Counted from the stretch's first letter, positions 631 through 28,548 are shown. The stretch: 64,000 nucleotides of DNA from Orbicella franksi (GCA_964199315.1 OZ116700.1:15748001-15812000), one strand, 5' to 3'. Notes: generated from the sequence alone by a model not told the origin. Program-made: numbers and translations.

Positions 631-2573
631 TATCAATCCATCACCTTTTTATTGTGCAATATTAATTCATAGGCTCAGACTACAAGAGGAGAGGAGAGGG
701 AACTGAAGAGGCAGCAGGATCTTGACTATGAAGAGTCACTCCAGAATGACAGAGAGAAGGTGTGAAAAACTAGCAGCACTTTGGCACTCCATGATATGAA
801 AAGAACTGTACAATACTTTTTAAATACTGGCTAATTATATCAAGTGATGTTCTAGCACATCTGATTAGTTCCTTATTTGCTTCAGGCAAAAAGGCAGAGG
901 AATACAAAAGCCTGTCAAACAGACGATGGACCAACCCCTGAGGTATCACATTTGATATTAGTAATGCAACAGATAAACTATTCTCTTGTTGCTTCTTGCT
1001 AATTCAAGCCATTGCCATGGTTAATGGCTGTAATGCATGTACCCCTATCATGACCTTACCACTGTAGAAAACAGGCTTGTTGGCTTTTTCTGTACCATGA
1101 AAAATACTTCGAAGGCATTATTTTGGAAGCATAGATGTCCAGCATATATATACACCATCTTTCAAGGTGTTTCTCAAGCCTAAATAAGTTATTAATTAAC
1201 AAATCGTACAAGACAAATTTAGATCCAATAATGAATAATGGGTAATACATTTATAGTCTGTGAATTTGTATTCCAGCCACGACCAGAACCAGATGAGGCC
1301 ACAAATCCACCACCAACAAAGAGGCTGAGATCGGATGAATTGACTCGTATCATCGTTATTTTGCCAGATGGAGAAAGGCACCAGTTGGATATTTCACGGG
1401 AAAGTCCATTGAAGGTGGGTAATGTGAATACTCTGAAGAAATGCAGATTTCGATGCCTTTCATTTACCATTAATATTATAACCCAGATGTATGCACAAGA
1501 CCATCTAATAATAGTATAACCCAGATGTATGCACAAGACCACATAATTTGTTGTTTCTAATGTAGCCTGCATCACTTGGTTTGTTGTTGCCCCTTCAATA
1601 TTGGAAAGTTTTGATGGTGAAATTCATTGTGCCCTTGTCTCAAGGCTCCCCTTTTTATTATATGACACCATGGAGTCATGGATATGCTATTCAAAAATAT
1701 CATCCTAAGGGGCTCAATTTATGATGCTATGGGCAGTTAAGGTGCATGTGAACAATGTTTCCCCAAAAATAGGCCTTTGTATTTGAACAAAACTGTGTCA
1801 TGAGCCATCGAAATGGAAACGGCCATGAGTTTGTAAGTCTCAGGCCCATGTTTCTTGTTATTCAATGCGGCCTAATCTTGAATCACACACTTCCAAGAGA
1901 GACAACTGAAACAATGAACCACTATAATGCAATATACTGAAGTCACTATTGGAAAAACTAAGCAGTAATTAGGGAGTAACTACAAAGTTAAGGATATAGA
2001 GTGGTAAAATCAGAGACTTGCCCATATCCTCATTTAAATTCCCAGACCTAGGCTGATTGGAGAACTATTTTTTTTCACAATTCTCGCCTGTCAGATGCCA
2101 TGATTATTCCCATCATAAAATTAATGACCGCAACTGAACTTTTCAAAATTTCCATTATAAAAGAAGTAATCAGGAAATATCAACTTGACATCAATGTACA
2201 GCAGATGTCTTTCTCAGGTGTTTGCAACTCCAGGAGATGGCTGAAATTTAAGCTGTGTATAATCTCTTCTGGTAAATCAAAGAATATTATCAGTGTGATT
2301 GGGTGGGCACAATCCATTGTCTACTAAAATAATATATTTGTTGTCATGTAAAGCAATTTGGTGAGATACTACTTCTAAGGGCCTCTTATCTCATCTGCTT
2401 GCATTTTAAATTAAACACAGGAGTTGTACCAACAAGTCAGAAATTTGCTACCTGAAGGCTCAACAACCATCTCCCTAACCTATCAAGTTGACAGAAACAT
2501 CTGGAGACTAGTCCCTGACCATGAAACAGTTTCAAATGGAGCCAAATTGTGTCCTGAAGTCCAGTTATGGTGA
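81..2573 (+). CDS. 3' part of a spliced FAF1/FAF2-like UAS-coiled coil-UBX domain gene (exons 81-140, 301-376, 673-759, 886-942, 1277-1414, 2421-2573)
   Basis: All exons are bounded by AG/GT. The joined translation gives ..ELKRQQDLDYEESLQNDREK (FAF-type coiled coil 'RQQQD..Y..SL..DREK') followed by the UBX-like TRIIVILPDGERHQLDISRESPLK|ELYQQVRNLL..., with stop TGA at 2571-2573. One frame break occurs near 700-712. Confidence 0.7.
592..639 (+). repeat. (TCAA)n microsatellite in intron
   Basis: tcaatcaaatcaatcaatcaatc... run read directly; it explains the spurious ORF 403..672 (SINQ repeats). Confidence 0.95.
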
Positions 2574-3439
2574 AGACTTGAATGAAACTGATCCCTGAAA
2601 TGACCATTTTCATTTGAGTCAAGAACCTAGCTCAATGAAGGAAATGCCCGACTTGTTTCTTCAGAGAATGGATATGTGGGAAATGCTGACTCCTGAAATT
2701 CACTTGTGAATGTTTCCAGTTGAGACTTGCAGCACACACTATCTTTAGCCAATTTAAAATGCTGACTCCTGAATCAGTTGAGAACTGCAGCATTCATTGA
2801 AATTACAAGGTTTTTCATTGATTTTAGCATATTTAAAACATGCTTTGGCGTGATTTATCAACCAGGGAAACTCAACAGACTTTTTAAACTTTTCTGCACC
2901 AAGCAAATGGAAAATTAATTCACTCACGTTTTAAGAGATTGGGACCACTGAGTTTTTGATTTCATGCATTTCTATCACTACTTAAATGAAAGTCAAGATC
3001 AGCATTCTTTCAATGAGCAATGATTTGAAGCATATTTCCGTTTTATACAAACTAACTGATCTACTCATAGTTTTCACCTGTAAATCTCGCCAGAGCATAA
3101 GTGTGCCATTATTGACCTTTTTACAATCTTTTTATGCCTGGCAACAATGAGTCAAGTTGGTTACTTGATGATACCCCCTGAGACTTGGAATGCTACTCCT
3201 TATCTATTGGGAAACATTTGGTCACACTACACACAGTTGAGTAGAGTAAGAGAATTCCAATGTACATCTGACCAAAGAAAGCAGGATAATACCCTCTTAG
3301 AAATGAGGGGGGGACCAGGAAACCATTGCCATAATAATGGGTCTGTATTTGTTTAGTATAAGTATATAATTGGTATTGTTTGTCTAACTCCACAAAATAT
3401 ACTAACTGCCTTAGCCTTAGGTATGATTAGCAGTCTTAT

Positions 3440-3730
3440 GGTCCCTTCCACACTACACAAGAGAAATTTGAAAACACATGCAACTTTATTTTTAAGTTAG
3501 GCCTACTGTCCAAAATATAATGTCAGGGAAATGGAACTTTTCTAAAATGCTCTGCTCTACAAACTGGAGGAATTTGAAAATGCCAGTATGAATGAAAAAG
3601 TTTGAAAGTGAAGCTTTTCGAAGATGATGATATCACAAAAACCGTGTGATTTCTCTGCACAAGTTTACCTCAAACACAAGCAATCTCAAATTTCTCTGGT
3701 GTAGTGTGAAGGTCACAGTTTGTATTGAAA
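3440..3730. mobile_element. Degenerate MITE (Harbinger-like anthozoan repeat)
   Basis: Motifs ccacactac..gaaatttgaaaa, ggaggaatttgaaaa, cctcaaacac, gtgtagtgtg resemble a common anthozoan MITE (recognised from memory; not searched). Confidence 0.35.
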
Positions 3731-4511
3731 AGTATTCAAAATTAAAAACGGAAAAACATTGAAAAATATCATACTCTTCCTATAGTTAGGGTGTAGCCCA
3801 AACTACAGCTTAATTTGCAGCTAGCTTTTGATGTGTGGCTTATATAGACTACATACGAAAACATGCCAGGATACTTTTCTGTGAAAATTATCTGTTCTGA
3901 GGAGCGCACACAGGTTTTTGAGAGGACCAATGTGCTCTTTGAGGAACAGATGATGTCCATGGACAAATAGATGCGAATATTTTCCTGCCAAATGAAGGCT
4001 GTTGTGTTTATTGTCTATTGAATATTTTTCACAACACGCTAAGTTTTGAAAATTGGGGAACATCACCTCAGTTTTATCTGGTGTATAATCAGTCACGTGA
4101 CACATTTACACCAACTGCGTGCTAGCTAAAATATCTGATGGATTATAATGCCAGATATTAACTTGTCCTCAAGTGTGTAAGAGGGAAAAGTTGTTAATGT
4201 AAATGGTAAGGGAGGTTAAAGTCTTGTGTAGGATGGGTGTATGATTTTCTGCTTTCAAAAGACAGAGCTGTCCAAAATTGTTTTGCTGTTCTCTTTTGAT
4301 ATAAATTCACCAAATATTGCCTGCTTAATGACATTTTGCAGGGCACAGAAAACAAACTGAATACAGTCAGCAGAAGTATGATTATCATTGAAAGTTTAAT
4401 GTTAGGTCTGATTCGATGAATGTGGATTGGAATAATTCTTATAAAAATCCTTATCTCCCTTAGTTGACAAAACAGAACATAGATTCTGAAAAGAAGTATT
4501 TACAAAAATTG

Positions 4512-5030
4512 GGGTGTCTACAAAACGAAGACCGAAGATCGAAGACCGAAGATCGAAGACCGAAAAACGAAGAGCTCATATAATTTTACGCCTTTAAAAC
4601 TCAAGGCAGTTATAATCATCGATAATCAGGCTTAAGTACTTTATCGGACGCTATCACACGCGAAACCGACGGGGTCTTCGTTTTGTAGTTTAGGCCGGGT
4701 CAAACTACAAAACGAAGACCCTCGCTCAAACGCTCTTTAAGACGCCAAAAGACGCGAAACCGACTGGGTCTTCGTTTTGTAGTTTAGGTTGGGTCAAACT
4801 ACAAAACGAAGACCCTTGCTCAAAAGCTCTTTAAGATGCCAAAAGACGCGAAACCGACGGGGTCTTCGTTTTGTAGTTTAGGCCGGGTCAAACTACAAAA
4901 CGAAGACCCTCGCTCAAACGCTCTTTAAGACACCAAAAGACGCGAAACCGACTGGGTCTTCGTTTTGTAGTTTAGGCCGGGTCAAACTACAAAACGAAGA
5001 CCCTCGCTCAAACGCTCTTTAAGACCCCAA
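4512..5030 (+). repeat. Left TIR: CGAAGA(C/T) micro-repeats, unique segment, then 4 x 94-bp hairpin-containing units
   Basis: CGAAACCGAC recurs at 4661, 4755, 4849, 4943 (period 94). Each unit contains GGGTCTTCGTTTTGTAGTTT-N10-AAACTACAAAACGAAGACCC. Confidence 0.95.
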
Positions 5031-5904
5031 AACTCTTTTCCAAATTTCGATCTCACACGATCAGGCGTTTTCTGTTAGGGGTGGACCATTAGATTTTTGA
5101 TGGGGGGGTTGTGCAAATCCCCAAAAAATATCGATCATATGCTTCTAGTTTAAATAAAATATCATGCACATTTAAGATGGAAAAAAATATTGAGCAGCCG
5201 TAATCAGGGCGCGGGAAAAGTGGCTTTGAGTCATCTTAGTTACCATTGGAAGGAAAAAATGCCTGGTACATGTCAGGGATATATATTTTTGATGACTCGT
5301 TTGTCGCCTCCTTATAAGGTACCTTTCAATTGCGATGCCATCAGATAAAGCTACGTTCTTTTTTGGCGAGGTAGCCTGGCTATTGGCGCGGTAATTTATT
5401 CACATCTGAAACTCGAAAAACTACTTAGCCGTTCTTTTTATCCGCTCAATTTGGACACTTAACGTCTCGTAGAAAAGGTATAGAGATGTAAAGGTGTCCA
5501 AATAATTTATTTTAAACACGAACCTTAAATCCTTTGAGTTTTGATGCCTGGAGTTCCGTTGTGTCTGTTTCCAATCACGTGTAAAGATTTGTTAAAACAC
5601 AGATTTCGAGAAAGTTCGAAGATGTGTCAGTCCAAAAAATCGGGTTTGAACTTGCGTCTTTAAACAACCCTTGCTATGAACGACTTAATTTTTTGTTTAT
5701 CTTTGGGTATTTTAAAGAAAAAATCTCTCGAGATGTATTTAAAGCTAACAAAAACTTGCTCCCCAGCGGAAATCACACCTCCATTAAAAAGTCCAATTTG
5801 AGGACTTTTCATTAGTCGATCTTTTCATTCTTCCAGTGGCGATAACAAAGAACGCTTGATCGTAGGCTGCCGCTTTTTAAAATATGACCTAGCGTTGAAC
5901 AACG

Positions 5905-7680
5905 ATGGCAAATTTTCGGAAGTTTAATCTTCCTCAACTTCTGAGAAGGGATCCTGAACCTCATAATGACGGGATACCGCGGTTTGACTGCAACAAATTG
6001 CTTCTTAAAGATCGTGTTGGCCACAGATCATTTGGCGATGTTTATACTACCGATTACCACGCGCCAGGAAAGGACACATCAGAGACGGTAATTATCAAAA
6101 AAATGTTGAATGCCCTGGATTCAGAAGAAAAGAAAATCTTCTCAAAAGTGGCTCTATTGAATGGCCTAAATCATCGCAATGTTGTTAAATTCATGTCAGT
6201 TTGCCATCAGCCGCCAGCCATAATGCTGGAGTACGTGTATTTTGACTTTAAACTCTTCGGTCCAGAGGTACGTGTTAGCGCACTCTCTGATTTCCTTTTA
6301 AAGATAAATGAGCACAACTGCGCCGGATTTCATGAAGTTGTTAATCATGCAGCTACGGAGATAATCGGTGGCCTAGCTTACCTTCACGGCAAAGGGATAG
6401 CCCACAGAGACCTAAAAACAGCGAACATTTTAGTAAGTAATCAACATTACAGCTCGTTGTCTGTGGATACAGAAGAATTCCAGCAGATTTATCAAGCAAG
6501 GCCTATTGCCTGCAAGCTCACTGATTTCAGTGAAAGTAGATCTCTCTTCATTCAAACCCAGGCAGTCCTTTCAACTAAGACCACCACCATTGATCGGGGG
6601 ACAGTGGTTTATATGGCACCAGAGCTTCTGGTGAAAGAGAACATCATACCGAGTGCGTCCATTGCCGATCTCATGCTGGCAGACATTTGGGCCCTAGGCA
6701 TGATAATTTTTTCGATGCTTAACCCCAGCCTTAAAACCCCCTACATCATGGAAGTGCGATCTGAAGGAGGTGTAAGCAGTCAAGAAAAGTTGAAAGAATT
6801 CATCGTCTCTCTTTTACAGAAACAAAAGCTTCCATTACAAGACGAAAAATACGCCATTGATCGTGCTACAGTTTGGTGCGAGTTAGAGAAAGTTTACAGG
6901 GGTTGCACTAATTTTGCCCGAAAGGAAAGATTGCCCCTGCAAGAGGCAGCCCAGATTTTAGCAAGGAGACAAGATAGATTCTCGAGGGACATGCAGGTTG
7001 TTAACCTAAGGGTTAGCCAGGCAACTGCTCTTGAAGAGTTTGATCAAAGGTTAGCCGGCAAACTCGAAGGAGATGTAGAGTCCTTACAGTCGGAGATAAT
7101 GCCAGTGAATGATGCGACGAACACGTGTGCTTTCCTCTCGATTGGTATTGCAGAAAGCATCTTATATGAATCAGAAATGGAGGAATTTTTTGAAAATTTA
7201 CCAAAAGCCGTGGAGTTGACCATTTTGTCTTTACCAGAGAGAATAAATGAGCACCGCGACCTGGGAAAAACCTACGATGCCCTAGAAGCATATGAAATTC
7301 TTAAGCAACAGCAGATTATCAAATACCTGTTGGAATTCTCCGAGAAACTGCCCTATGCAGACGGGGTATTTACTTATGAAGGAAGAGAAAACCTTTTCAC
7401 GAAACTTTGTGTTCTTGGTACTGAGCGCTTCATTGCAATTTATGCAAGTGATCCATTTGTACTGACCATTGGTTGTCATAACAGCAAACCCTTTGTCATC
7501 GACACGCATCCAGTTGCACCCCCCTTCGGAAATGGAAATGGCCTCGTTCTTAGAGGAAATGAAAACACCCCTGAGGTTTGGATGTCTATCTGTGTGTGGC
7601 TTTGGCAGAGACTTTACCATGGCGGAGTGAATCCAACCACAGCTCAATCATTAGCAGTCGTTACACTGGATGCAAAGTAA
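5905..7680 (+). CDS. Protein kinase domain fused to a C-terminal putative papain-fold (C76/herpes tegument USP-like) peptidase; transposon cargo
   Basis: 591-aa ORF. Kinase motifs GHRSFGDVY, VIIKK, HRDLKTANIL, KLTDFSE, YMAPE, DIWALG. C-terminus has TNTCAFL (Cys codon 7126-7128) and FVIDTHP (D 7501, H 7507). The stop TAA lies inside a GTAAGT donor-like motif (7677-7682). Confidence 0.85.
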   Translation: MANFRKFNLPQLLRRDPEPHNDGIPRFDCNKLLLKDRVGHRSFGDVYTTDYHAPGKDTSETVIIKKMLNALDSEEKKIFSKVALLNGLNHRNVVKFMSVCHQPPAIMLEYVYFDFKLFGPEVRVSALSDFLLKINEHNCAGFHEVVNHAATEIIGGLAYLHGKGIAHRDLKTANILVSNQHYSSLSVDTEEFQQIYQARPIACKLTDFSESRSLFIQTQAVLSTKTTTIDRGTVVYMAPELLVKENIIPSASIADLMLADIWALGMIIFSMLNPSLKTPYIMEVRSEGGVSSQEKLKEFIVSLLQKQKLPLQDEKYAIDRATVWCELEKVYRGCTNFARKERLPLQEAAQILARRQDRFSRDMQVVNLRVSQATALEEFDQRLAGKLEGDVESLQSEIMPVNDATNTCAFLSIGIAESILYESEMEEFFENLPKAVELTILSLPERINEHRDLGKTYDALEAYEILKQQQIIKYLLEFSEKLPYADGVFTYEGRENLFTKLCVLGTERFIAIYASDPFVLTIGCHNSKPFVIDTHPVAPPFGNGNGLVLRGNENTPEVWMSICVWLWQRLYHGGVNPTTAQSLAVVTLDAK

Positions 7681-8039
7681 GTGTACTCATTATTAATCTC
7701 TTGCAGAAACCCATAAGGGTTGAAATGTGTAACTCCCTATAATTCGTATTGTACAAAGCGTTTACACATTTGTTGCCATTTATAGTACCATATTTGGAGT
7801 ATCAGGAAAAAAAATTCAATTTTTTTTTTAAATTCACAGCGCGCGCTAGGCTGCGCTTAATGGCGCAATCTTGTTTAGTCTTGTTTTTGAATAAGCTTGG
7901 TTGTATAAAGTTAAATTCGGTTAAATTCTTCTGTTTCGTTGCCATTCAATAGTCTAGAAAACTTATCTTGGATACACTTAATGAGTTCTCTTTTTCGGTT
8001 AATTTACAGTGTTCAGGTGGAAATTCAAGTAACTTACCG

Positions 8040-8297
8040 CGAAACCGAAAATGTTGTTGCGTGTGAAGAACCACGAGCCGCTAGGTGAGTGGATCTACAA
8101 CAAACTTTGACAATATTAGGACGCAAATTTGTGGTATGATTCTCGCCTTATCAAGATTGCAGCGCTGAACCAGTGCTGATATGTTTGACAAAACTTTCGC
8201 TGATTTCGTCAGCTTTCAAATTTCATCCGTCTGTACTCTTATTGACAATAAAAATTAGCCAATTAGCGGGCGAGAAATCGCTCAGTAATTGTAAAAA
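8040..8297. mobile_element. Anthozoan MITE fragment inside the MULE
   Basis: Recognised motifs ccacgagcc..gagtggatctacaacaaactttgacaat and ttattgacaataaaaattagccaat..gcgagaaat..ttgtaaaa. Confidence 0.5.
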
Positions 8298-8566
8298 AAG
8301 TATTCGTGTACAAACTCTTCGTGTTTCCAAATATGGTATTTGGCAAAACTGAATATTCCAACACTGTGAGCGCACGCTACACATTTCAATCCCTTATGTG
8401 CTTTTGTCTCTTGCAAATGACGTTAACTTGTTGTGTTCGACGACAGGAGAAGGCAACCTTAATCTTGTGTAGCTAAGAAAAATCGAGATTTTGTGTGTTC
8501 TGCATTTGCCTCGCTTTCGTTTGGACGCAAATTTGCCTCGCTTTTGTTATTGGCGTGATACCTTAC

Positions 8567-8770
8567 ATGGATTTCCATCACACCACCATTGTCGACAGGG
8601 TGAGGGATTACCACAAGAGACTCCTCCTTGAGGCTTGGCTCTATAGGGGAGACTCAACGTGGTCAATTTCATAATATGGGCGTTGGTCTGACAAACTTCT
8701 AATTTATACTTCATTTGTAAAGTTTTTCTGAACCAGTTGCTGAAGAAGTGTACCCTACTGCACATAACCA
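8567..8770 (+). mobile_element. Penelope-like element 3' fragment (GIY-YIG C-terminus plus tail)
   Basis: Translates MDFHHTTIVDRVRDYHKRLLLEAW, similar to the PLE 'D...T.I.D....Y.KRL.LEAW' segment, followed by the CTGAAGAAG motif (~8740). Confidence 0.6.
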
Positions 8771-8922
8771 GGATAGAAGGGTAAGGAGTAATGCTTAAGT
8801 TTTAGAATATAAGCAGGAAGAAAAAATGTATTTAGTATAGCAACATATGATAAAGTCATTCATTGGTGTAAGGCTTCCAAGTTCTACGCTCGCCCTCCTT
8901 AACTTTTTGGCCTTCATTTCAG

Positions 8923-10572
8923 CGAAAGAACCAAAAAGGCATTGGTGACAGTTCTCGCATGAACGCAGAGCAAAGCAAAACACACGGAGAAAAGGAAAGA
9001 AATGCAGGACTACTAGACAAAGCAAAGGTACGACTCAACATCCTGAATATCTGGGTTACTGTTTAGTAGAGCAATAAATAAATGTTGATGCGAAAGACCT
9101 CCACAGTACCAAATACCAATGGAGATCTTAGTGACATTTCTTCCCTTCTTTCCAGCAAACCGAACGTCCCCGTACGGATGAAGAGAGCATAAAAAAGCAC
9201 CGTCAGAAAACTGCACGCGGAGAAAAGGTACGTTTAAACACTAAGATCGTCTTGAGTATTCATCAACTTTGACATCAGATGGTTTGCGGAATTAACTATG
9301 CACATAGTGCAATGGTCGTTGTATAGCGCCTGTAGGCTTGTTTAATCAAGTATGGCCGTAAAATTATTAAAAAACACCGTCCGCCCTACGCCCCACATGA
9401 CTTTTCATCAAAGCATTTCTTCCCTTCTTTCCAGCAAACCGAACAGCGTCCCCATACGGATGAAGAGAGCGTAAAAAAGCACCATCAGAAAACTGGACGC
9501 GGCGAAAAGGTACGTTTAAACACTAAGATCGTCTTGAGTATTCATCAACTTTGACATCAGATGGGTCGCGGAATTGACTATGCGCATAGTGCAATGTTCG
9601 TTGTATAGCGCCTGCATGCTTGTTTAATCGAGTATGGCTGTAAAATTATTAAAACATACCGTCCGCCCCACGCCCCACCCCAAAAAAAGACGAACGAAAG
9701 CCCCACATAATTGTCTCTCCCGGATATTATTTCAAGGGTTGTCATTCCTGATTATATAGCCCTTATTTTTCATTAGAATATAGAGTAAGACTTCTGATGG
9801 TCATTTATCGACGGAGTGATAAGATCATGTTGTCTCATTTTATGCTCATGAATACAAACATTTATGACACATCGATTCCCATCTATATGTACGAAGCCCA
9901 TCCTGAAATAAAAAAAAATACTCCTGAAAGAGGATAGAAGTTTATGGGTTAACCTCAGGAATGTCCTTCAGCCTTTGCGCCTGTTGTCCGTGTTTCTGTA
10001 CAGTTAAAGCTAGATATTCCCGTACTTTATTAATGTTTTCTTTTTCAGCCAAAAAAACACAATGACACTGGCGATTGTACTGATATGAATAATGGCAGTG
10101 AAACAGAGGAGGAGCAAACGTGTTCGCAAAGAAATGAGGTACAACAGTTAGCGTATTAGGAGTATTTGTTAAGTAGAACAATAGACATGAAATCTGTAAT
10201 GTAAAATACAAGAAAAACAAGGAATGAAATTTGAACGAGTATACACTGCTAGTTGATTTTACCAAGCTGTTGTCGCTTAGGAGTCATCCACACAGTTTAT
10301 CCAATAGAGAAGTTTATCCTAGTGAGCACGTAAAGGCTGATATGATTTTCGCAATGAAAATATCGATGTATTTAAGATTTGGCTTTATTTGTTGGAAAAG
10401 GTATTACTGGCCTATAGTCCTAACTTCGAACATTTTTTACTGTCTTTGCGCTTAGGAGCAATGTAACGATGAAGTGCTTGTGTGCACGGATGATGCTCCG
10501 GTGTTACCCCAAGTTTCAGGTCTCAGTGACTCTGATAGCAGTAATGATGACTTGTTGTGCATCTTATATAAG
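8923..10572 (+). CDS. Five phase-0 internal exons (8923-9027, 9156-9227, 9435-9509, 10049-10138, 10456-10572) encoding a charged linker upstream of the transposase
   Basis: Each has a polypyrimidine-AG acceptor and a GT donor, length divisible by 3 (105, 72, 75, 90, 117 nt) and no stops: RKNQKG..DKAK, QTERP..RGEK, QTEQRP..RGEK, PKKHND..QRNE, EQCNDE..ILYK. Confidence 0.7.
9134..9680 (+). repeat. ~280-bp tandem duplication of an exon plus intron
   Basis: catttcttcccttctttccagcaaaccgaac...cgccccac occurs twice (~9134-9397 and ~9414-9678). Confidence 0.9.
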
Positions 10573-10642
10573 GTAGGCGAAATTCAATCGGGATCTTTTT
10601 TGTATTTAATATACTACAATTTCGTTATTTCGAAAGTGTTAT

Positions 10643-11115
10643 CCCTCGGACGTATAAGCAATTTCCCACCACTACGGCGGTAGGGGATGGTGGTGGGGGG
10701 AAATGATGTACCGCAGTTTCATTCTATTATTGAACAGCTTACTCTACAAGAGGACATCATTTGTGGTGGATGTGACGTCATATATACCTAGGTTCCCCCC
10801 CCCAACCCACTTAGATATGCAATCTTAGATTTGCACTGTTTTCTAAGAAAGTCTGGAAATGACGGACATCGAAAAATGCCAGAAGACTTGTGCAAGGTGG
10901 AATTATGTTGTTTTTTCCCTTGACATGCTGCTAATTATCAAGTCACGGGAACGTCAAACATCGCGGACACATAGCTGACATAATTTCCGCAAGGGATTAA
11001 TTAGCAGCTGCTCAATGTTTTGCATTCATTAAGCGAAATTCCTTATTCAAAACTACTGAAAACTACCTCGAGAAGGGTGGCATCCACCAGCCCCCCTCCA
11101 TTGTGCATCCGGAGG
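10643..11115. mobile_element. piggyBac-like MITE in the last intron, flanked by TTAT on both sides
   Basis: TTAT|CCCTCGGACG ... CATCCGGAGG|TTAT; imperfect short TIRs of a known anthozoan MITE type that normally sits in TTAA. Confidence 0.5.
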
Positions 11116-11506
11116 TTATGTCGGGGATTAAAAGATGTATCTCCTAGGCAGAGCTCTTATCAAATTGACATAGTGAATATATGGAAGACATGAACAGAAC
11201 TGCGGATTAAGAAATAAATGAATGAAGTGAACCTCATTCATTTCGTCGAACCTGTTAGGAAAAACTGCAAGTGTATGCAAGCAGACACTCACGTGGAGAG
11301 GATTTTTGAAACCTTGAAAACTAATTAATAAGGACGTTTTTCTTATTTTTATGTTAGTAAAAACATAAGCCGGGTTCTGCAAGAATTACCTTTAAACAGA
11401 TACAATTTTGACTTTATACTGCACAGTAAAAACAGGACGTATTTTGTAAATCACTTTCCGGCAGTAACTTTGTTTGACTATGTATTGTCCTTCTATACAT
11501 TTGCAG

Positions 11507-13922
11507 ACAAAGGAATGTTGGAATGGTGACGAAAGGATACCGTTGTTTGAGAAGGGATGACCTGAGAGATACACAGTCGATCAAGCCTTAGAAATCATCA
11601 GCGAACACAGCCTCACATGCGCAAAATGCACCTGTCAACCTTTGAAGGTGAGAGAAAATGCTTCGTTCCTGATCAATTTGAAATGGTTTGACAACTGGGA
11701 AGACATAAAAGCCGATATGAATGGTGTATACGACGGCGTCCTAGATGTGCAGTGTGGACAATAGAATGGTATGATGGTATGTGGTCATTACTGCATAAGA
11801 AGAAAGCCCCGCTATCTTCCATGGAAAACTATCATTTAGTTCAGAATTCCAGGAGGAACAAAGCTGCGCCATCTCTTGCGCGTTCAATATTTATATTGAA
11901 AGACATGAAAGGAAACATCGTTAACAATGTTTGTCTTTTACAATACCATGTTGACAACGCTGAAGGACGAGTTGATGATGTAGAGGTGCAGAAGCATGGT
12001 AACAGCCGATCCTCAAACCCAAGGCTGTTCTATCCACTTAAGAAGAGCATGCTTGGGTCAATTAAAGATAACGTGAAGAAGAAAGGATCGCAAGGAGTTT
12101 ACAGCGACCTGAGGAAAAAGGCTGGTGGAGTTTTCGGTGCTTCTGTGTCGGAGCTGCCTCGCGCGAAACAGCAAATTTACAACGCAAAGTCCAGGATGAG
12201 CAGTACTGTCACACAGGATGACGTTGAAGATCTTTTGAAGTATGCCCAAGACAAGGAAGACCTGATTCTGCACCACGCCGACTATCCCGAAGATCTATGG
12301 GTTCTAGGAACTTCCAGCATGTGTTCCGATCTGTCCAAGTACACCACATCAGGCATACTTTCCTACCCATTCTGTGTTGACCCAACATTCAAAATGGGGC
12401 AGTTTGAAGTTACTCCCATTGTGTACAAAAATCAACTCTTGAAGTCTAAGAGGACGAATGAAAGCCCTGTTTTTTTAGGTCCCACAATGATTCATCATAA
12501 GAAGACCTATGCCGCCTACAGGACTCTTGCATCGACGTGTGCAGCAAAATGCAAGGAGATAACAAAGGCAAAAGGTTTTATTACCGACGGAGAAGAGAAT
12601 CTCTATAAAGCCTTTGAACATGAAATGAAAAATGCAAGGAGCCTACGTTGTTTTAAACACTTTGAGACCAACTGCACGGAGAAGCTAAGAACAACGGGAA
12701 TTCGCAAAACAAAGGAACAACGATTCTTCCTGCAATGGGTTTTTGGCGTTCATGGGAAAGAGGAAGGCATACTCGATGCTGATAATCAAGAAGACTTGCG
12801 CCAATGTTTGGACTTGGCAAAGATGGAAATAGAGAGACGAGAGCGGGAGGTTCTGAAGAGGGAGGATGAGGCGTATAAACCGAAGTTTTGGTCCTTTCTC
12901 GACGAGCATTTTGAAATGATGGGTTCTCACATGGTCGTGAATGTCCGAAAGGAAGCTGGAATGGTAGTAGAAGATGACAGCAAACCTGCTCGCTGTTATT
13001 CCAACAATTCAGAATCAATGAATAACGTCATGAGGTCTGCCAAGGAAACGTTCCTCAAAGAAAATCCCTGTATTTCACAGCTGAACAAGATTCAGTTTAC
13101 ACAAAATGTTTTTGAGGTTGTCCATGCACACCAGATGGAAGAGCTTCACTCTGCAATCGCTGGGCTCAGTGATGAATATATACCACCCCAGTGCCATCCA
13201 GCGAAAAGCAAGTATGCAAACTGGTGGAGTTCTGCAATTTGAAGTTGCAAGTGCCGGATCTGAAAACGGAACACTGCAGGTTTCAGTTTACAGTGATCAT
13301 GCGACATGTGTGTAAACGGTACAAGCACGACAACATCTGCAAGCATTCCCTGGCAGTAGCTGCATTGAAGTCAATTCTAGCCGCCCACCTTGATTTCATC
13401 CGAAAGAAATCAAAGAAGGTTTGTAGTAGAATGGCTCTTGCCGAACACAACGTCCGAAAAGAGACAGCCGGGAAGAAGGGAGGCAAGAACAAATATCCCT
13501 ATCGACCAGCACGGGGCAAGCCAACTACAAGCACGAGCGTATCAACAGAAGTAGCTGACACCCCTTTGTACTCTGAGATTTACCACAACGAAAATTCATT
13601 TGTGTTGATGTTCCTGTCGGAGGATGCAAAAAGGTGTAAATCCTGTCATCTAGACTTCTGGCACAAAAAGAAGACAATTCCCTTCGACGTCATCTTCTCC
13701 CACAAAGAACGATGGATGTATCCCATCAATGGAGATTGGGCAAATTGTAGGCCATCCAACCGTGAGACCGTCAGGTACTACCACGCCGCAAAGAAGTGCC
13801 TAATGGGCCGGTTTCCCTACTTCTCCGAAGAGTACATCCACATTCCTGGGGACATCAAGGACAGTCTTCGTGAGTCTCACAAAACATACCTCACGAGCGA
13901 GTTTGAGCTAAACTTTGATTAA
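11507..13922 (+). pseudogene. MULE transposase terminal exon (DDE core, SWIM Zn finger, C-terminal CxxC..HxxxxC), disrupted
   Basis: Acceptor ttctatacatttgcag at 11506, phase 0. Stop TGA at 11558-11560; frameshifts at ~11740 and ~13190. Motifs VDPTF (D 12379), FITDGE (D 12586), CFKH, NNSESMN (E 13012), SWIM-like VCKRYKHDNICKHSLAVA. Confidence 0.88.
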
Positions 13923-14007
13923 ATCTTTCCTCGATATGTGAACACTTACGAGCAAGCCTTGCAGTCGCCCCATTCCGGTGTCAGCATGTTTTATACAATG
14001 TTCGATT

Positions 14008-14278
14008 AAATGCGCGGGCTGTGACTGGTCAGTTTGAGTTCATTATTAAAGAAATAAAAAACGTATCCGAATGCATTGTTGAGTTATATAAGCACGTGGT
14101 GATTTTTAAGAACACAAGAGAAGTGCTAGAAGCACTTGGCTGCGCCTCGTGCTTCTCTATGCACTTCTGTCGTGTTCTAAAAATCACCACGTGCTTAAAT
14201 AACTCAATAATGCATTCGGATACATTTTTTATTTCTTTAATAATGAACTCGAACTGACCAGTCACAGCCTGCGCATTT
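14008..14278. mobile_element. ~271-bp near-perfect palindromic MITE
   Basis: aaatgcgcgggctgtgactggtcag... / ...ctgaccagtcacagcctgcgcattt. Mirror ORFs 14021+ and 14029- begin with identical peptides. Centre ~14143. Confidence 0.85.
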
Positions 14279-15022
14279 TATAAAACATGATGAAAACGCA
14301 CCATTTGTATTTGTATTAGAGAAAATTTACTACAATTTATCTCGATTGGCTGGCTTTCAGTGTACGCATTGTCATAGAAACTGAATTAAGCACAAACAAT
14401 GGTTTATGGCGGAAGAACAGGGTCTTAAGTAATCTAAGTTGGCAGAAGAACAGACAGACGCCGAGATTTCTAAAACAGTTTTCTCGACTGTAAGCACTTT
14501 TGGATCAGGATCCTCAAAATTGGCAACTTTCTCGAAATTATTAACTTAAAATGAGGGCGGGACATTTGTTTGTTGTCTTTTTGTGTCTGTTAGTTGGTTG
14601 CCAAAAGTGTCTTCAAAAATGTAACTCGGTAGATCGCGTTTTAACCACTGGATGAATTGTTTCTTGCGTGAGTTGTTGAATGATACGCGCTGTAGATCGG
14701 GAGTTAAAAAGTAAAATGAAACTGTAAAGCACACATTTTATCATAATATTTCCCCGGGAGGAAATTAAGTTAGTTGATCATCAGACATCTTAGGAGGTTC
14801 TCGTTGAAAGTTAAAAAATAGATATTGTTAAAACATAAAAAGTACACACAGTATATTATAATGAAATTTTTAAGACGCATTTTCGGAATATCGCAAAATC
14901 TACAGTCCGCTGCAATGCGGCAGCAAAAAGAAAATAATCTCGAGGTTCTCGTGGCTCATGTTCATATTTCAAAGTCTTGCATAAGTCAACATGTCAAAAC
15001 TTTTTTAACCGAGTAGTAAAAT

Positions 15023-15540
15023 TAAATTTAACATCTCATACCAAACATTTTACACGTCAAGTTTTCGAGCCTTTTGAAAACGCTAGAATTAGAATGTGGG
15101 AAAGTTGCATTTAAATGTTCACATTTTGGTGGATTATTGTATAAACGACAGCATTATAGACGCCGTTGTTACGGCAATCATTTTGTTACTATCGTAGAAT
15201 ACCGTAACTATGGAATTATATTTTATCATGAGTTCGTTTCAGTTAGCATTATAAGATGTACGTTTGTAATCATAAAGGTAGTAAATTTAAATTGAACATC
15301 TCATACCAATATTTTATACTCACGGTTTCAAGACTTTTGAAGACGCTGGAATTAGAATGTGGGAAACTTGCATTAAAATGTTCACATTTTGATTGATTAT
15401 TGTATGAACAAAACTATAAAAGACGCCGTTGTTACGGCAATCAATTTGTTACTATCGCAGAATACTGTAACTATGGAATTATATTTTATCCCGAGTTCGT
15501 TTCCGTTAGCATTATACGATGTACGTTGTAAATCTTAAAG
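15023..15540 (+). repeat. ~265-bp diverged tandem duplication, non-coding
   Basis: aacatctcatacca...gacgccgttgttacggcaatc...gatgtacgtt occurs at ~15023-15277 and ~15288-15540. Confidence 0.85.
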
Positions 15541-16082
15541 CATTAACTCACTCGAAAATATCAGATCAAAGCTTAACGACAAGCCGGATTGTAGTCTGGA
15601 TATTCACTGGCGCTGAATATTGACCTAGACAAGTTTGTATTTTTGGCACCCGAAGAATTTGTTGTTCCCCACAGGATGCCATTTTCTGTAGCATTACTTT
15701 CGTTTAATCCACATTGTCTGCTCAACATAAATATATACATGTATACGCGTTTCTCATGTCAGTTTCCCTTTGCTATTCCAGCAGCACAGCTCTTGGCTAC
15801 CTATACTATTTTTCGGTCTAGTCTTCGAGCTTTGATCTGACAACCTTTATGGAAAAAAAATTCTTGGCCATGCCCTACTTGGAAGGATACGCCTGTATAT
15901 CAGGACAAGGAAAGGGAATGACATTCGGGTTTCAAATACAATGCATATCGACTATACTTGGATTGAATTGTTGTAAAAATTATTTTTGATACTGTTATTC
16001 AACTGAAAAAAGGCAATAGGGAATCGGAGTATAAGAATAAAATAATCGTTAATTTCATTATTCGTCATGCTTTCTTCAAGGA

Positions 16083-16769
16083 AACTGTTTGAGCGAGGGT
16101 CTTCATTTTGTAGTTTGACCCGGCCTAAACTACAAAACGAAGACCCAGTCGGTTTCGCGTCTTTTGGCGTCTTAAAGAGCGTTTGAGCGTGGGTCTTCGT
16201 TTTGTAGTTTGACCCGGCCTAAACTACAAAACGAAGACCCAGTCGGTTTCGCGTCTTTTGGCATCTAACAAAGCGTTTGAGCAAGGGTCTTCGTTTTGTA
16301 GTTTGACCCGGCCTAAACTACAAAACAAAGACCCCGTCGGTTTCGCGTCTTTTGGCGTCCAACAAAGCGTTTGAGCGAGGGTCTTCGTTTTGTAGTTTGA
16401 CCCGGCCTAAACTACAAAACAAAGACCCCGTCGGTTTCGCGTCTTTTGGCGTCCAACAAAGCGTTTGAGCGAGGGTCTTCGTTTTGTAGTTTGACCCGGC
16501 CTAAACTACAAAACGAAGACCCTGTCGGTTTCGCGTCTTTTGGCGTCCAACAAAGCGTTTGAGCGAGGGTCTTCGTTTTGTAGTTTGACCCGGCCTAAAC
16601 TACAACACGAAGACCTAGTCGGTTTTGCGTGTGATAGTGTCCGATAAAGTACTTAAGCCTGATTATCAATGATTATAACTGCCTTGAGTTTGAAAGGCCT
16701 AAAATTATATGAGCTCTTCGTTTTTCGGTCTTCGGTCTTCGATCTTCGATCTTCGTTTTGTATACACCC
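16083..16769 (-). repeat. Right TIR: 6 x 94-bp hairpin units, unique segment, micro-repeats
   Basis: GAGC(G/A)..GGGTC recurs at 16091, 16185, 16279, 16373, 16467, 16561. The outer ~150 bp is the reverse complement of 4512-4660. Confidence 0.95.
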
Positions 16770-17153
16770 CAAAAATTGATAAGTGAATAATGGATGGAGA
16801 GTTATTTTTCTTGGTAAGCATAGACAAAAGATAAAACATAAAGGTAACTTAGACTAGTAGATTTATACTAAACCAATTAGATTATTTGCTCTTGATTTCT
16901 ATGTGTGATAGTTGACGAGGGCACAGCACGCAATAGAAATCTCTAGCTCATAGTCTAATTGCTTAAAGTAGTTGGTAGACCTTAGCCTTTTGTCCAGGAG
17001 AAAAGGGTCTGGTTGTCAAAATAAGGTTCGGATAACAAGATGTTTGTACATGTCAGTTGCAAAAAGAATGAAATCAAGCAAAACTCGCTATTCTAAGACC
17101 CATCCTGTCCATTTTAATATCTTTTAGTGTTGAACAGTCGGATTTCCTCTTGT

Positions 17154-19974: not shown

Positions 19975-20520
19975 GGAAATATTCTCGTAAGTAACCAGCA
20001 TTACTGCAGCATCACTGATGAAAAAGAATTTCAAGACCTGTGGGAATCAAGACCAATTATTTGCAAGCTCACTGATTTTGGTGAGACTAAGTCTCGCAAG
20101 ATCCAAAAACTTTGATGCAAACTAAGACAGCTGCCTTGACAGAGGTATGCCTACTTACACGGCGCCAGAGATCTTGTTATTAGAGAACGACTTCCCGTTG
20201 AAGGAACCATTGAAGACCTTAAAAGAACTGGGCTTATGGAATGGTACTTTTTCTCATCTGTAATCCCCAATTAGGATTCCCTTACCAGGAAGACATGAAG
20301 AAAAGTCAGAACAAGATAGCAGGCATTGAAAGCTTGCTCAAAGAATGCAAGAGGCCAGCCTTTGGCAAGAATTACATCCAACTGGTAAAGACGGGAGAAT
20401 GGTGGCATTTATATCGAGTCCATGAGGCATGCACATGCTTTGAACCAGAACAAAGGCCATCAGCTGCAGACATTATTACACTGTTGCTTGAAAGAGAAGA
20501 GGAGTTTGGCAAATTACACT
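19975..20520 (+). pseudogene. Decayed second copy of the cargo kinase family (C-lobe)
   Basis: NILVSNQHYCSITDEKEFQDLWESRPIICKLTDFGE, DRG..YTAPE, GMVLFLICNP..PY, RPSAADIITLL. Shares the distinctive NILVSNQHY..EEFQ...RPI.CKLTDF insert with ORF 5905. Confidence 0.85.
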
Positions 20521-24830: not shown

Positions 24831-27800
24831 ATGTCTAACAAGCTAACTTATGACATTACATCGTTAAACGTAAGAGGATTAAGAGAACAAAGTAAAAGGA
24901 GGAGTATTTTTTCGTACCTTAAAGATCAAAAATCGAAACTCTATTTTCTACAAGAAACATATTCAGAGGTGAACGATGAAAGTATTTGGAGAAATGAATG
25001 AGGAGGTAAAATATTCTTTTCCCATGGCACCAAACACAGCAAAGGTGTTTGCATTCTGATCCATGCCTCGGTGCAAGACAAAATCAAGTATTCTTTCAGC
25101 GACAAGTTCAGAAGAATTGTGTTAATTACTATTGTTATCAACTCTTTAATGCTATCGCTCTGCAATATTTACGCCCCAAACAATCAAGGTGAACAACTAG
25201 AATTTTTGCAAGAACTAAATAATTGTCTTATAGACAAATCAGAACTGACTACACTGATCGTAGGTGGCGACTGGAATTGCACTTTATTAAAGAATGATAA
25301 AATTGGTGGCAAGCCCTGGAAAGCAACCAATTATAGAAATTTAGTCCTGACTACTATGGAGATACTGGATCTCGTGGACATTCAAAGAGAACGACATCCA
25401 AAATTGCGCAAGTATTCTTACGAATCTAAGGTTTTAAAAGAAAAATCCAGGATAGACTTTTTTTGGTGGCCCAAAACTTGACACAATTCGTCAAAAAGAG
25501 TGAAATCTATCCTGCTATAGCGCCTGATCATAAAGCAATTTACATATCATTGTTTTGTCTAATGAAACACCTAGAGAACACGGACTCTGGAAATTTAATA
25601 ATTCTCTGTTGAATAATGAAGATTATGTCAACAAAATACGTAAAACATATTTTCAAACTTGCTCTTATTACTCCAAGTTAACCGACAAACGGCTTTTTTG
25701 GGAGATGCTCGAAATGGAAATTAGGGCAGCAACCATCTCTTTCAGCAAAAATTTAGCAAAATCAACAAATTGCAGGGAAATGGAAATAACACGTCGACTT
25801 CAGGTGTTAGATGAGTTCATTTGTAATAATTTTCTTTCCCCTGACATTGATCAGGTCTTAAACGAATTTGAGGATCTCAAAACAGAACTTCAAACAATAT
25901 ACACCAAGAAGGGAAAGGCAGCAATCTTTAGATCAAAGTGTAGATGGGTGAAAAAAGGTGAGCGCCCCACCAAATACTTTTTTAACTTAGAGAGAAAAAA
26001 CTACAATAAAAAGACTATATCTGAACTACGGATGGAGGATGAAACGATTATTAAAAGCAAGACCCAGGTTTTAGACGCTATTGAAAATTACTTTAATGAT
26101 TTATACACATCAGCATCTAGCGCAACACAGGAGGAATACGATAGCTTTATTCAGGAATTGCGCCTGCCTAAGCTTTCTGATGAAGAGCGAGATGAACTTG
26201 AAGGCCTTTTAACGTACGACGAATGTAAACAGGTTTTAGAAACTTTCCAAAATGAGAAGTCTCCAGGTGAGGATGGTTTTACGGTAGAATTTTATAAGTT
26301 TTTTTTCGAACTGCTTGGACATAATCTCGTCGAAAGCTTCAATGAAGCTTATGAAACAAATGAGCTTTCCATCTCCCAAAGAAGAGGTATCATTACTCTT
26401 ATACCAAAGGAGGACGGCTCCCTGTTACATTTATCGAACTGGCGACCAATAACTTTACTTAATGTTGACTGCAAGATAGGAACTAAGGCCATAGCTAGGA
26501 GAATAGAAGCTTCGCTGCCAAAGCTAATAAACTCACACCAAACCAGGTTTATAAAAAGGCGCTATATTGGGGAAAATATCCGCCTCATAATCGACATTAT
26601 GGAATATACTAAGAGGCATAACATCCCAGGCATTCTAGTGTCTCTAGACTTCAGAAAAGCCTTTGACTCACTTGAATGGCCCTTTATAATGAGAACACTG
26701 GATGTCTTCAATTTCGATACGAGTATTCAAAAATGGGTTAGCACCTTTTACACCAACATAGAGAGTGCAGCATTAAACAATGGTTTTTTGACAAACTGGT
26801 TTCGGCCGTCTAGAGGAGTCCGTCAGGGGTGCCCACTATCCTTGTATTTGTTTATTCTTTCAGTAGAAATAATGGCCAATAAAATCCGACAAGACCTACA
26901 CGTCAAAGGAATTGAAATATTAGGAAAAGAACTGAAATTGAGCCAGTATGCAGATGATACAAATCTTTTGTGTGCTGACCTGGCCTCTGTCGAAAAGGCC
27001 TTAGAAATAATCGATAACTTTGGTACGCTAGCAGGCCTTAAATTAAACCAGAAGAAAACAAAAGCGCTCTGGTTGGGAAAATTGAAAAATAATAAGGGCA
27101 ATCCATTACAACTGAAATGGTTACATAACCCGGTTAAAATCTTAGGAATCCATGTTTCGTACGACGAAAAAGGAAATAACCAACATAATTTCAACCACAA
27201 GTTACAAAAATTGCAAACAAATCTGGACCTATGGAGGGCACGTGACCTTACACTATTTGAGAGAGTACTAATCATAAAATCTCTGGCACTATCACAACTC
27301 ATTTACTCAGCATCAAATCTCAATGTACCTCAAGAAATAATACCAATAATCAAAACAAAACTGTTTAGATTTCTATGGAAAAACAAAAAAGACAAAATAA
27401 AAAGAGAAGGGCTCTATCAAGATCGAGATAAAGGGGGTATACGTATGATCGATGTAGAAACTATGATAAAGGCACTGAGGTTAGCTTGGATTCCGAGACT
27501 TTTTGCACCGGGAAAAAAAACTGGAAACTGTTCCAGACCATTATCTAGGAAAATACAGCGGTCTGAGCTTTCTTTTAAGATGTAACTACGACACAAAATA
27601 TATCAACGGTTTGCCATCATTTTATAAAGACATTTTAAAATTTTTCAATGAATTGAAAACCTTGTATAACTATGACAGAGGACAGGATATGATCGTATTT
27701 AATAACAAAGAAATCCTCGTTGGAGGGAAGCCCATTTTCATCAGTGAATGGCTTAACAACAACATTCTTTTTATACAAGACCTGTTGAACAACAATGGCC

Positions 27801-28548
27801 AGTTTATGTCTTATCAAGAATTTAAAAACAAATTCACTTGCAAAACAAACTTTCTCCAATTTTATCAAGTTGCAAGTGCGATACCGAAGCATCTAGCCAC
27901 AAAAGCGAAAAACACATTACCACCAGAAAGCGAACCATATATCGAGAACAACCCTCTTTTCCAACTAGACGACTTGACAGAAATTAACTTAGTCAAAGCC
28001 AAAACTAGGAACTTCTATTGTTTAATTAACAAAAAAATTCACACGAGGTGTCAAACTGGCCCAACGAAATGGAATCAAACCATGCAGTTGGATGGGGAGA
28101 CATGGGAAAAAATATTTTCCTCGCTGAAAAACATTTGTAAGGAAACAAAATTAAAAGAATTTCAATTCAAACTTATTCATAGAATTGTTGTAACAAAAAA
28201 GGAACTTTTTAGATACGGAATCAAAACGGATGATGAATGCCTCTATTGCGCTGAACATGATTCAATCGACCACACATTTAATGATTGCGAATTTGTTAAG
28301 AGCTTTGTTAAAAACATCATCGACTGGTTTAATGCTGTCAATAATTCGAATTTTAGTCCAACAATAGAAGAAAAACTATTTGGCATCTGTCCGGCTCATA
28401 CGATAAAACATTATTAAAGAAATTTAATTATACGATCTTGTTTATGAGATTCTACATCTACACTTGTAAGATGCAAAACAAAGCTATTCACCTCTCCATT
28501 TTCGTTGATAAAGTGTTAACCAAATACAGAATAGAACATCTTTCTTAA
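24831..28548 (+). pseudogene. Tx1/L1 ORF2 (APE endonuclease, RT, CCHC Zn finger), several stops and frameshifts
   Basis: SLNVRGLR, LQETY, GGDWN, SRIDFF, KSPGEDG, WRPITLLN, RQGCPLS, QYADD, CLYCAEHDSIDHTFNDC. Confidence 0.92.

Follow-up and report, generated by a model that had tools for sequence, protein, structure and literature searches.

A coral Mutator-type transposon whose kinase-deubiquitinase exon ends in a stop-containing splice donor and is likely joined to the transposase

The subject of this report is a Mutator-type DNA transposon that spans 4512-16769 (12,258 bp) of a 64,000-nt stretch of the Orbicella franksi genome (GCA_964199315.1 OZ116700.1:15748001-15812000; the whole stretch is hereafter called the window, and positions are counted from its first letter). 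This copy is a dead, internally deleted element of the Mutator (MULE) superfamily. We consider it likely that it represents a family in which a single transposon carries, as its first coding exon, a protein kinase followed by a VTD-type deubiquitinase domain, and that this exon ends in a splice donor containing the stop codon, an arrangement that predicts a short kinase-deubiquitinase and a long protein in which both enzymes are fused to the transposase. The fusion is taken to be real for the family because relatives carry it in uninterrupted open reading frames (ORFs), because the donor is conserved and because the donor is used in two subfamilies. The window copy itself cannot encode the fusion, since its transposase and its kinase are both degenerate.

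Fused reading frames and gene models in relatives

Kinase, VTD domain, linker and transposase were found in uninterrupted single ORFs in four more distant relatives (P0130, 1304 aa; P0136, 1200 aa; P0273, 1409 aa; P0278, 1250 aa). All four sit on metagenome-labelled contigs, have intact kinase and VTD motifs, and match Pfam Pkinase together with either MULE or SWIM. They align to the window as kinase, VTD domain and transposase in the same order, and the gap at the linker is 115-185 aa long, compared with about 170 aa from the window exons. A search for single proteins combining Pkinase, MULE and SWIM had been proposed in the first-pass annotation of this DNA, and these four proteins answer to it, with SWIM in some of them. 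No terminal inverted repeats (TIRs) were found in the available flanks of the intron-less fused ORFs L004, L006, L007 and L009.

Gene models from other cnidarian genomes join neighbouring parts of the chain. The Porites lobata model P0183 contains a VTD exon, a linker exon and a transposase exon that begins at the homologous acceptor, the Acropora cervicornis model P0040 continues from kinase and VTD domain into a linker, and the Dendronephthya model P0097 combines the kinase, the linker and the N-terminus of the transposase. When the linker-transposase ORF of contig L012 (see below) was used to search for a fully spliced protein of the window's subfamily, nothing was returned beyond unspliced fragments and the model from Porites lobata. 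Module order, strand and junction phase are kept across subfamilies down to about 30% identity, in cnidarians and echinoderms.

The most informative complete element was L002, whose kinase is 75% identical to that of the window. Its TIR arms (179 nt) are 100% identical and it has an intact transposase ORF of 831 aa; because of these two features and the presence of a target site duplication (TSD), L002 is judged to be a young and possibly active copy. The transposase frame of L002 opens exactly at the predicted acceptor (15158), and the conserved N-terminal 59 residues of the transposase precede the first Met. The predicted linker exons (one of 97 nt, then four of 81 nt) form an open chain that contains no Met. 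Since the linker exons are Met-free and the N-terminus lies before the first Met, translation of the L002 transposase must enter from upstream.

A different partner was found in L060, where one ORF of 1132 aa (1861-5259) encodes kinase, VTD domain, linker and a RecQ-type helicase (Pfam DEAD, Helicase_C and RecQ_Zn_bind). Because the helicase stands in place of the transposase, the kinase-deubiquitinase cassette seems to have been reused with other DNA enzymes.

Conservation and use of the stop-overlapping donor

The first coding ORF of the window (5905-7680) encodes 591 aa, with the kinase domain at residues 36-348. It had been annotated as ending in a perfect phase-2 donor at 7676/7677; the donor is indeed present over the stop codon, an overlap conserved in 33 of the 40 loci with the canonical end point (19 of 24 distinct contexts). 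Donor position +5 is G in 14 of the 19 distinct contexts and position +6 is T in 14 of 19; both positions lie outside the stop codon. The C-terminal residues of the homologous ORFs fit an NNG codon in 50 of 51 cases.

The homologous donor is used in two sister subfamilies. Contig L010 lacks exactly the segment 11598-12206 of L011 (AT|GTAAGT ... TAG|G) and continues in frame into the linker. Contig L037 lacks a 151-nt intron, identical in place and phase, that is present in the 99.6%-identical L039; the L037/L039 subfamily is about 30% identical to the window. The spliced L010 and L037 forms remain open in frame for about 100 codons or more, and the unspliced L011 copy for about 270 codons.

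Linker exons and the transposase acceptor

Splicing further downstream was read from L012 (JGI contig Ga0099807_1079765, 6345 nt), which is 98% identical to the window and is the one transcript-like contig available for the window's subfamily. L012 is co-linear with the window from 5216 to 8780 and then lacks 8781-8922, 9028-9155, 9228-9434, 9510-10048, 10139-10455 and 10573-11506, each of which is bounded by GT..AG. The resulting junctions are 8780|8923 (0 mismatches), 9027|9156, 9227|9435, 9509|10049, 10138|10456 and 10572|11507. Five linker exons and the acceptor before 11507 are thereby confirmed to the base, because L012, another copy of the family, is spliced exactly there. L012 itself stems from a decayed copy, with private frameshifts at 12470 and within the kinase.

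The five phase-0 exons between 8923 and 10572 that the first-pass annotation had proposed are therefore all used as drawn; all are stop-free and their lengths are multiples of three. The transposase acceptor proposed with them is used as well. The annotation had overlooked an in-frame TGA (11558-11560) 17 codons past it, as well as the exon that ends at 8780, the further frameshifts and the internal deletion of the transposase, and the kinase lesions described below. Three junctions had been named there for checking. The last, 10572|11507, was found; the link 8028>8923 is replaced by 8780|8923, and the join from 7676 is unspliced in L012.

The second and third of these exons belong to a 282-nt tandem unit present twice at 9135-9678 (the copies are 92% identical and differ by an in-frame indel of 3 nt within the exon), and on this sequence evidence the linker grows as units of exon plus intron are duplicated in tandem. 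In L002, the repeated exons of 81 nt at 13400-14700 encode near-identical modules of 27 aa. The linker modules have KRK-type basic runs followed by hydrophobic or acidic stretches (VQILDND, EVIAIDLDESS); speculatively, they resemble nuclear-localisation and SUMO-interaction motifs.

The join between exon 1 and the linker

Because L012 keeps intron 1, the kinase-to-linker join in the window's subfamily is one that we infer. Upstream of 8721, the linker frame leading up to 8780 is closed. Among the enumerated candidate exons with their end at 8780, 8723-8780 alone is both free of stops and able to change phase 2 to phase 0. The acceptor of intron 1 in this subfamily is thus probably at 8723. The length of exon 2 is 1 mod 3 in three subfamilies (58 nt in the window, 97 nt in L002 and 709 nt in L011), which restores phase 0 in each.

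In the first-pass annotation, the join had been made through a micro-exon at 8010-8028. The letters are present, but the exon found no support: its splice sites score low (2.8 bits for the acceptor and 4.7 bits for the donor), it is unused in L012, and it lies inside a miniature inverted-repeat transposable element (MITE). That MITE had been placed just after the micro-exon and in fact encloses it (7704-8406). A tblastx match between window 8020-8076 and L002 13027-13083 was considered as a sign of micro-exon conservation and proved to be noise on direct alignment. The MITE is shared with L012, and L001 is co-linear with the window as far as its own end at 8074. L001 and L003 are unspliced and co-linear with the genomic sequence, and hence silent on splicing. 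An exon-chain search with a simple splice-site matrix found the five linker exons and also built chains from any starting phase; its best chain for the window used an exon at 8010-8084, within the MITE. Since chains exist for every starting phase, this search cannot decide the first junction.

Proposed products of the element

The following scheme is proposed for an intact element. A single sense-strand transcription unit would start just inside the left TIR. Its exon 1 would encode an active-type kinase and then the VTD deubiquitinase, and the next codon would be a stop located inside a phase-2 GTRAGT donor. When intron 1 is retained, translation would stop there, giving a kinase-deubiquitinase protein of about 590 aa. 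When intron 1 is spliced, a short exon would restore phase 0 and lead through the linker exons into a DDE transposase with a SWIM finger, giving a protein of about 1500 aa. Intron 1 would in this way act as a switch between a short and a long isoform. The kinase and deubiquitinase may modify the transposase itself, or host ubiquitin or DNA-damage signalling at the break.

A broader proposal, on which our opinion is evenly balanced, is that the family forms a still-active cnidarian and echinoderm Mutator clade with a three-enzyme transposase, that intron 1 sets the ratio of accessory to full-length product, and that the cassette is mobile and has also been joined to a RecQ-type helicase (as in L060).

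Alternative explanations

Several observations weigh against a fusion in the window's own subfamily. The uninterrupted fused ORFs are only about 30% identical to the window proteins, and the exon chain of L002 was predicted with a simple splice-site matrix, which gives non-unique chains. The intron-less state of L010 and L012 marks them as RNA-derived but does not in itself show abundance, and a literature look-up for JGI sample 3300008039, one of the two samples that hold these contigs, as a metatranscriptome returned no paper. One alternative is that kinase-deubiquitinase and linker-transposase are always separate proteins in the coral subfamily, the donor serving only for an intron in the 3' untranslated region or for a short alternative tail. 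This would account for L012, in which all of 7677-8780 is present and the kinase stop stays in the RNA, for the Acropora millepora RefSeq model (P0022, 598 aa), which stops at the canonical stop, and for over 50 kinase-VTD ORF clusters, about 570-600 aa in length, with a shared end point. A separate linker-transposase protein could begin at an in-frame ATG at 8959. The acceptor at 8723 scores poorly (aag|, -2.0 bits), and a rival cag| acceptor (exon start at 8737), unscored, appears stronger and would be out of frame and meet a stop. Separate proteins do not explain why the spliced forms of two sister subfamilies continue in frame, why exon 2 is 1 mod 3 in the window, L002 and L011, or why the L002 linker lacks Met and the N-terminus of its transposase precedes the first Met; relatives with the fusion in single ORFs and the Porites model linking VTD to transposase point the same way. 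Retention of intron 1 in L012 may have been caused by the nested MITE. We regard permanently separate proteins as unlikely, and a fused product remains the preferred interpretation. For the first-pass proposal of one kinase-peptidase-linker-transposase protein, this means that it stands for the family, through the fused ORFs and the used donor, and fails for the window copy, which is degenerate and whose close relative L012 retains intron 1.

The kinase-peptidase part might instead be a passenger without a role in the element, acquired by a Pack-MULE-like capture of host genes. MULEs are known to take up host gene fragments (PMC6431247), and the different divergence of the modules between window and L002 (given below) could mean separate histories. 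Such a passenger would not be expected to show order, strand and junction phase conserved down to about 30% identity in cnidarians and echinoderms, nor fusion of the modules in one ORF in several lineages, nor catalytic motifs conserved across the family. Pack-MULEs are non-autonomous, carry captured fragments of host genes rather than complete conserved enzymes, and have no transposase. In our element the transposase lies in the same unit and the kinase-VTD part is complete and conserved, and relatives have it fused in frame; Pack-MULE membership was accordingly rejected, and capture as a passenger is considered very improbable. The chance that the splice chain merely reflects open GT/AG-flanked stretches in AT-rich non-coding DNA is close to nil. 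Stop-free stretches of 24-39 codons are individually not rare and alternative chains can be drawn for any phase, yet six junctions were reproduced exactly in L012, which refutes chance for the five exons; for the micro-exon at 8010-8028 the explanation still holds.

Protein kinase domain

The Gly loop, VAIK Lys, alpha-C Glu, HRD, DFG and APE motifs are all kept in 20 relatives, fused ORFs included. The window kinase has three private lesions: GHG is changed to GHR in the Gly loop, the alpha-C Glu is deleted, and DFG is changed to DFS. A 3-nt deletion at 6145/6146 is seen in comparison with L012. P0001, which is 98% identical, has the consensus at all four positions concerned, namely the three kinase lesions and a change next to the predicted catalytic Cys of the VTD domain, and the ORF translations of L012 have the consensus at the two motifs that they cover (Gly loop and alpha-C Glu). 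The window kinase is probably inactive, because three catalytic motifs are lost.

Orthology could not be assigned by a search of solved structures, which gave generic similarity to JAK2, CDK2 and EGFR only (E 1e-14 to 1e-21). Public names of family members are mutually unrelated (CDK8, CDK A-2, BCK1/SLK1, ULK2, myosin light chain kinase) and seem to be errors of automatic annotation for an orphan kinase that transposons carry. Outside the element, at 19975-20513 on the + strand, lies a second and fragmentary kinase homologue (30-40% identity to residues 173-361 of the kinase ORF), which is probably the remnant of another family member.

VTD-type deubiquitinase domain

The C-terminal half of the first ORF (residues 350-591, about 240 aa) has no Pfam match, and so none to Peptidase_C76 or Peptidase_C48; a profile search of PDB sequences with this domain found nothing relevant. 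The AlphaFold2 model of the domain (predicted local distance difference test, pLDDT, 93.4) was compared with structure libraries using Foldseek. Among solved structures the matches were 8adc, 8adb and 8add (VTD) and 2j7q (M48 ubiquitin-specific protease of murine cytomegalovirus), with E values of 7e-6 to 1e-4 and template modelling (TM) scores of 0.48-0.64, and about 25 large tegument proteins of herpesviruses were matched in the viral library at E <1e-3. Because the modelled fold matches VTD, M48 and tegument structures, the domain is predicted to be a remote VTD or peptidase C76-like cysteine deubiquitinase.

In the window, the motifs are a Cys within NDATNTCAF and an Asp-x-His within IDTHP. 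In 36 aligned sequences homologous to residues 355-591, C54 and H181 were invariant and D179 and Q18 were conserved in at least 90%. The Cys and the Asp-x-His, with the Gln upstream, form the predicted catalytic arrangement. The window VTD domain has a private change that adjoins the predicted catalytic Cys.

Transposase domain and decay of the window copy

Across 29 aligned transposases of the family, D298, D368, E503 and H392 are invariant and C389 is conserved in at least 90%, corresponding to a DDE triad and a CxxH motif. Pfam MULE matches 20 of the 29 members (best E 5e-6) and Transposase_mut matches 8. In the Pfam test of the Mutator-type transposase, P0178 scored above the curated cut-off (22.5 vs 21 bits), MULE was below its curated threshold in every member scanned individually, and the window transposase alone reached 15 bits. 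SWIM matches 3 of the 29, all under the cut-off. A CxC...CxH pattern is present in L002 and in the family consensus, and is broken in the window by the frameshift at about 13307.

Decay of the window transposase begins with the TGA mentioned above, where L012 has CGA, and continues with a 1-nt deletion at 11743/11744 (intact in L012), a shift of frame near 13157-13180 and the loss of 2 nt at 13306/13307. In comparison with P0303 and P0296 (75% identical), about 85-90 aa are missing between the catalytic core and the zinc finger. This internal deletion is common to the window and L012, and because both carry it, their lineage is probably non-autonomous.

Window and L002 are 75% identical in the kinase-VTD part and 41% in the transposase, and the window transposase is nearer to the sea-cucumber proteins P0121 and P0280 (about 50%) than to that of L002. 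This discordance could reflect very different rates of change or re-assortment of modules.

Borders, layout and superfamily

The coordinates of all features are collected in Table 1. Long TIRs, as in Mutator/MULE elements, were found in the window, L002, L011 and L031. TSDs that fit the size usual for the superfamily (about 9 bp, range 8-11) were found for the window (CAAAAATTG) and for L002 ((G)ATTTTTTTC, 9-10 bp). In the left TIR of the window, the 7-mer CGAAGAC is repeated at 4526-4573, and a 94-nt subterminal repeat occurs four times at 4658-5032. The layout of TIR, kinase ORF, small exons, transposase and TIR, all on one strand, is shared by the window, L002, L011 and L031.

Sixty-four metagenome contigs were fetched with the C-terminal (VTD) domain as query, and 15 of them have at least 3 kb beyond the VTD domain. 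Eleven of these 15 have kinase, VTD domain and transposase on one strand. The other four (L016, L066, L072 and L074) have no transposase downstream: L016 and L072 consist of kinase and VTD domain with a conserved donor, and L066 and L074 have the VTD match only. Long introns, non-autonomous copies or domesticated kinase-deubiquitinase genes are possible reasons.

Table 1. Features of the Mutator-type element in the window, in order of position
Feature	Position	Strand	Evidence
Left TSD, 9 bp, CAAAAATTG	4503..4511		identical to 16770-16778
Left TIR, about 520 nt, begins GGGTGTCTACAAAACGAAGACC	4512..5032	+	about 500 nt 92% complementary to 16256-16755
Pkinase domain of first coding exon	5905..6960	+	Pfam Pkinase 95.8 bits
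VTD-type (herpes-tegument-like, peptidase C76-like) cysteine deubiquitinase domain, from modelled fold	6967..7676	+	fold and conserved residues
Phase-2 donor GTAAGT overlapping TAA stop of kinase-VTD ORF	7677..7682	+	AA|GTAAGT at 7676/7677
Nested MITE in intron 1, 703 bp	7704..8406		28-nt inverted ends and 7-bp TCTCTTG duplication on both sides
Linker exon, 58 nt	8723..8780	+	donor at 8781 (9.5 bits) confirmed by L012; start inferred
Linker exon, phase 0-0, 105 nt	8923..9027	+	both junctions in L012
Linker exon, phase 0-0, 72 nt, first copy of exon-plus-intron duplication	9156..9227	+	L012 junctions
Linker exon, phase 0-0, 75 nt, second copy of duplication	9435..9509	+	L012 junctions
Linker exon, phase 0-0, 90 nt	10049..10138	+	L012 junctions
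Linker exon, phase 0-0, 117 nt, acidic, Ser-rich	10456..10572	+	L012 junctions
Mutator-type transposase exon with SWIM-like zinc finger and C-terminal Cys/His region, decayed	11507..13922	+	acceptor in L012
Right TIR, 5.8 copies of 94-nt subterminal repeat	16087..16769	-	
Right TSD, 9 bp, CAAAAATTG	16770..16778		perfect match to left TSD

Relation to known systems and significance

Accessory enzymes are rare on eukaryotic DNA transposons. Examples are ULP1 in plant MULEs and OTU or VTD in Helentrons, and where such enzymes have been studied they point to handling of host chromatin, silencing or repair by the element. The plant KI-MULEs (Kaonashi) carry a ULP1/C48 SUMO-protease domain. Retention of the intron IVS3 of the P element gives a truncated product without transposase.

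With the MuDR/MULE superfamily, including cnidarian MuDR entries such as MuDR-1_NV, the present element has in common long TIRs with subterminal repeats, a 9-bp TSD, the DDE and CxxH residues and, possibly, a SWIM-type finger; it differs in that a kinase and a deubiquitinase precede the transposase, probably in the same reading frame. KI-MULEs and the Hydra element MuDR-6_HM, which carries an OTU domain (PMC6446971), are likewise Mutator elements with a cysteine protease of the ubiquitin or ubiquitin-like system. The protease is ULP1 or OTU there, whereas a VTD/C76-like fold is coupled to a kinase here, and membership of the KI-MULEs was rejected since Peptidase_C48 is not matched and the fold is VTD/C76 instead. 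A survey of MULE diversity makes no mention of a kinase (PMC6446971). In the literature search, which lay outside Repbase, no kinase-bearing Mutator element and no kinase-transposase fusion was found to be described.

Most non-viral members of the VTD family lie in Helitrons or Helentrons (Erven et al. 2022, PMC9741609), and VTD domains joined to domains associated with transposons are noted there for corals and sea anemones (PMC9741609). The words kinase, Mutator and MULE are absent from the text of that paper (PMC9741609). The fold and, probably, the Cys and Asp-x-His arrangement are common to these VTD domains and ours; the partner here is a DDE Mutator transposase with a kinase. The best structural match is to the ubiquitin-specific proteases (C76) of herpesvirus UL36 and M48 (TM about 0.5-0.59, Foldseek probability 1.0), with about 10% sequence identity and, here, a cellular and transposon-borne context. 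As in the P element, retention of one intron would give a truncated product and its splicing the full transposase. Unlike in the P element, the short product here would be a complete two-enzyme protein, with the stop built into the donor, if the proposed switch operates.

Protease-bearing MULEs and VTD-bearing Helentrons are thus already known, and it is the combination of kinase, VTD domain and Mutator transposase that appears to be new. If the fusion is correct, a transposase coupled to a conserved, intact kinase and deubiquitinase would represent a novel type, able to regulate itself or to manipulate its host, and Mutator elements would be a second transposon host for the VTD deubiquitinase family. 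It may also explain part of the many orphan-kinase copies in coral genomes. An intact element of the L002 type would provide a testable candidate for an active element.

Other features of the element and the window

The 3' part of the element contains, past the transposase stop, a near-perfect palindrome of 245 nt (14021-14265; a hairpin-type MITE or foldback) with mirror-image ORFs of 78 aa on both strands. A 263-nt tandem unit is present twice (87% identity) at 15013-15540, between the transposase and the right TIR.

The window as a whole has about 40% G+C and is eukaryotic and transposon-rich. Other mobile-element remnants were noted at 25555-28417, 38944-39546, 43617-44204, 49944-53000 and 62122-63351; they include reverse-transcriptase ORFs (RVT_1, zf-RVT, endonuclease-RT), a Tc5/pogo-type helix-turn-helix and a DUF7869 ORF.

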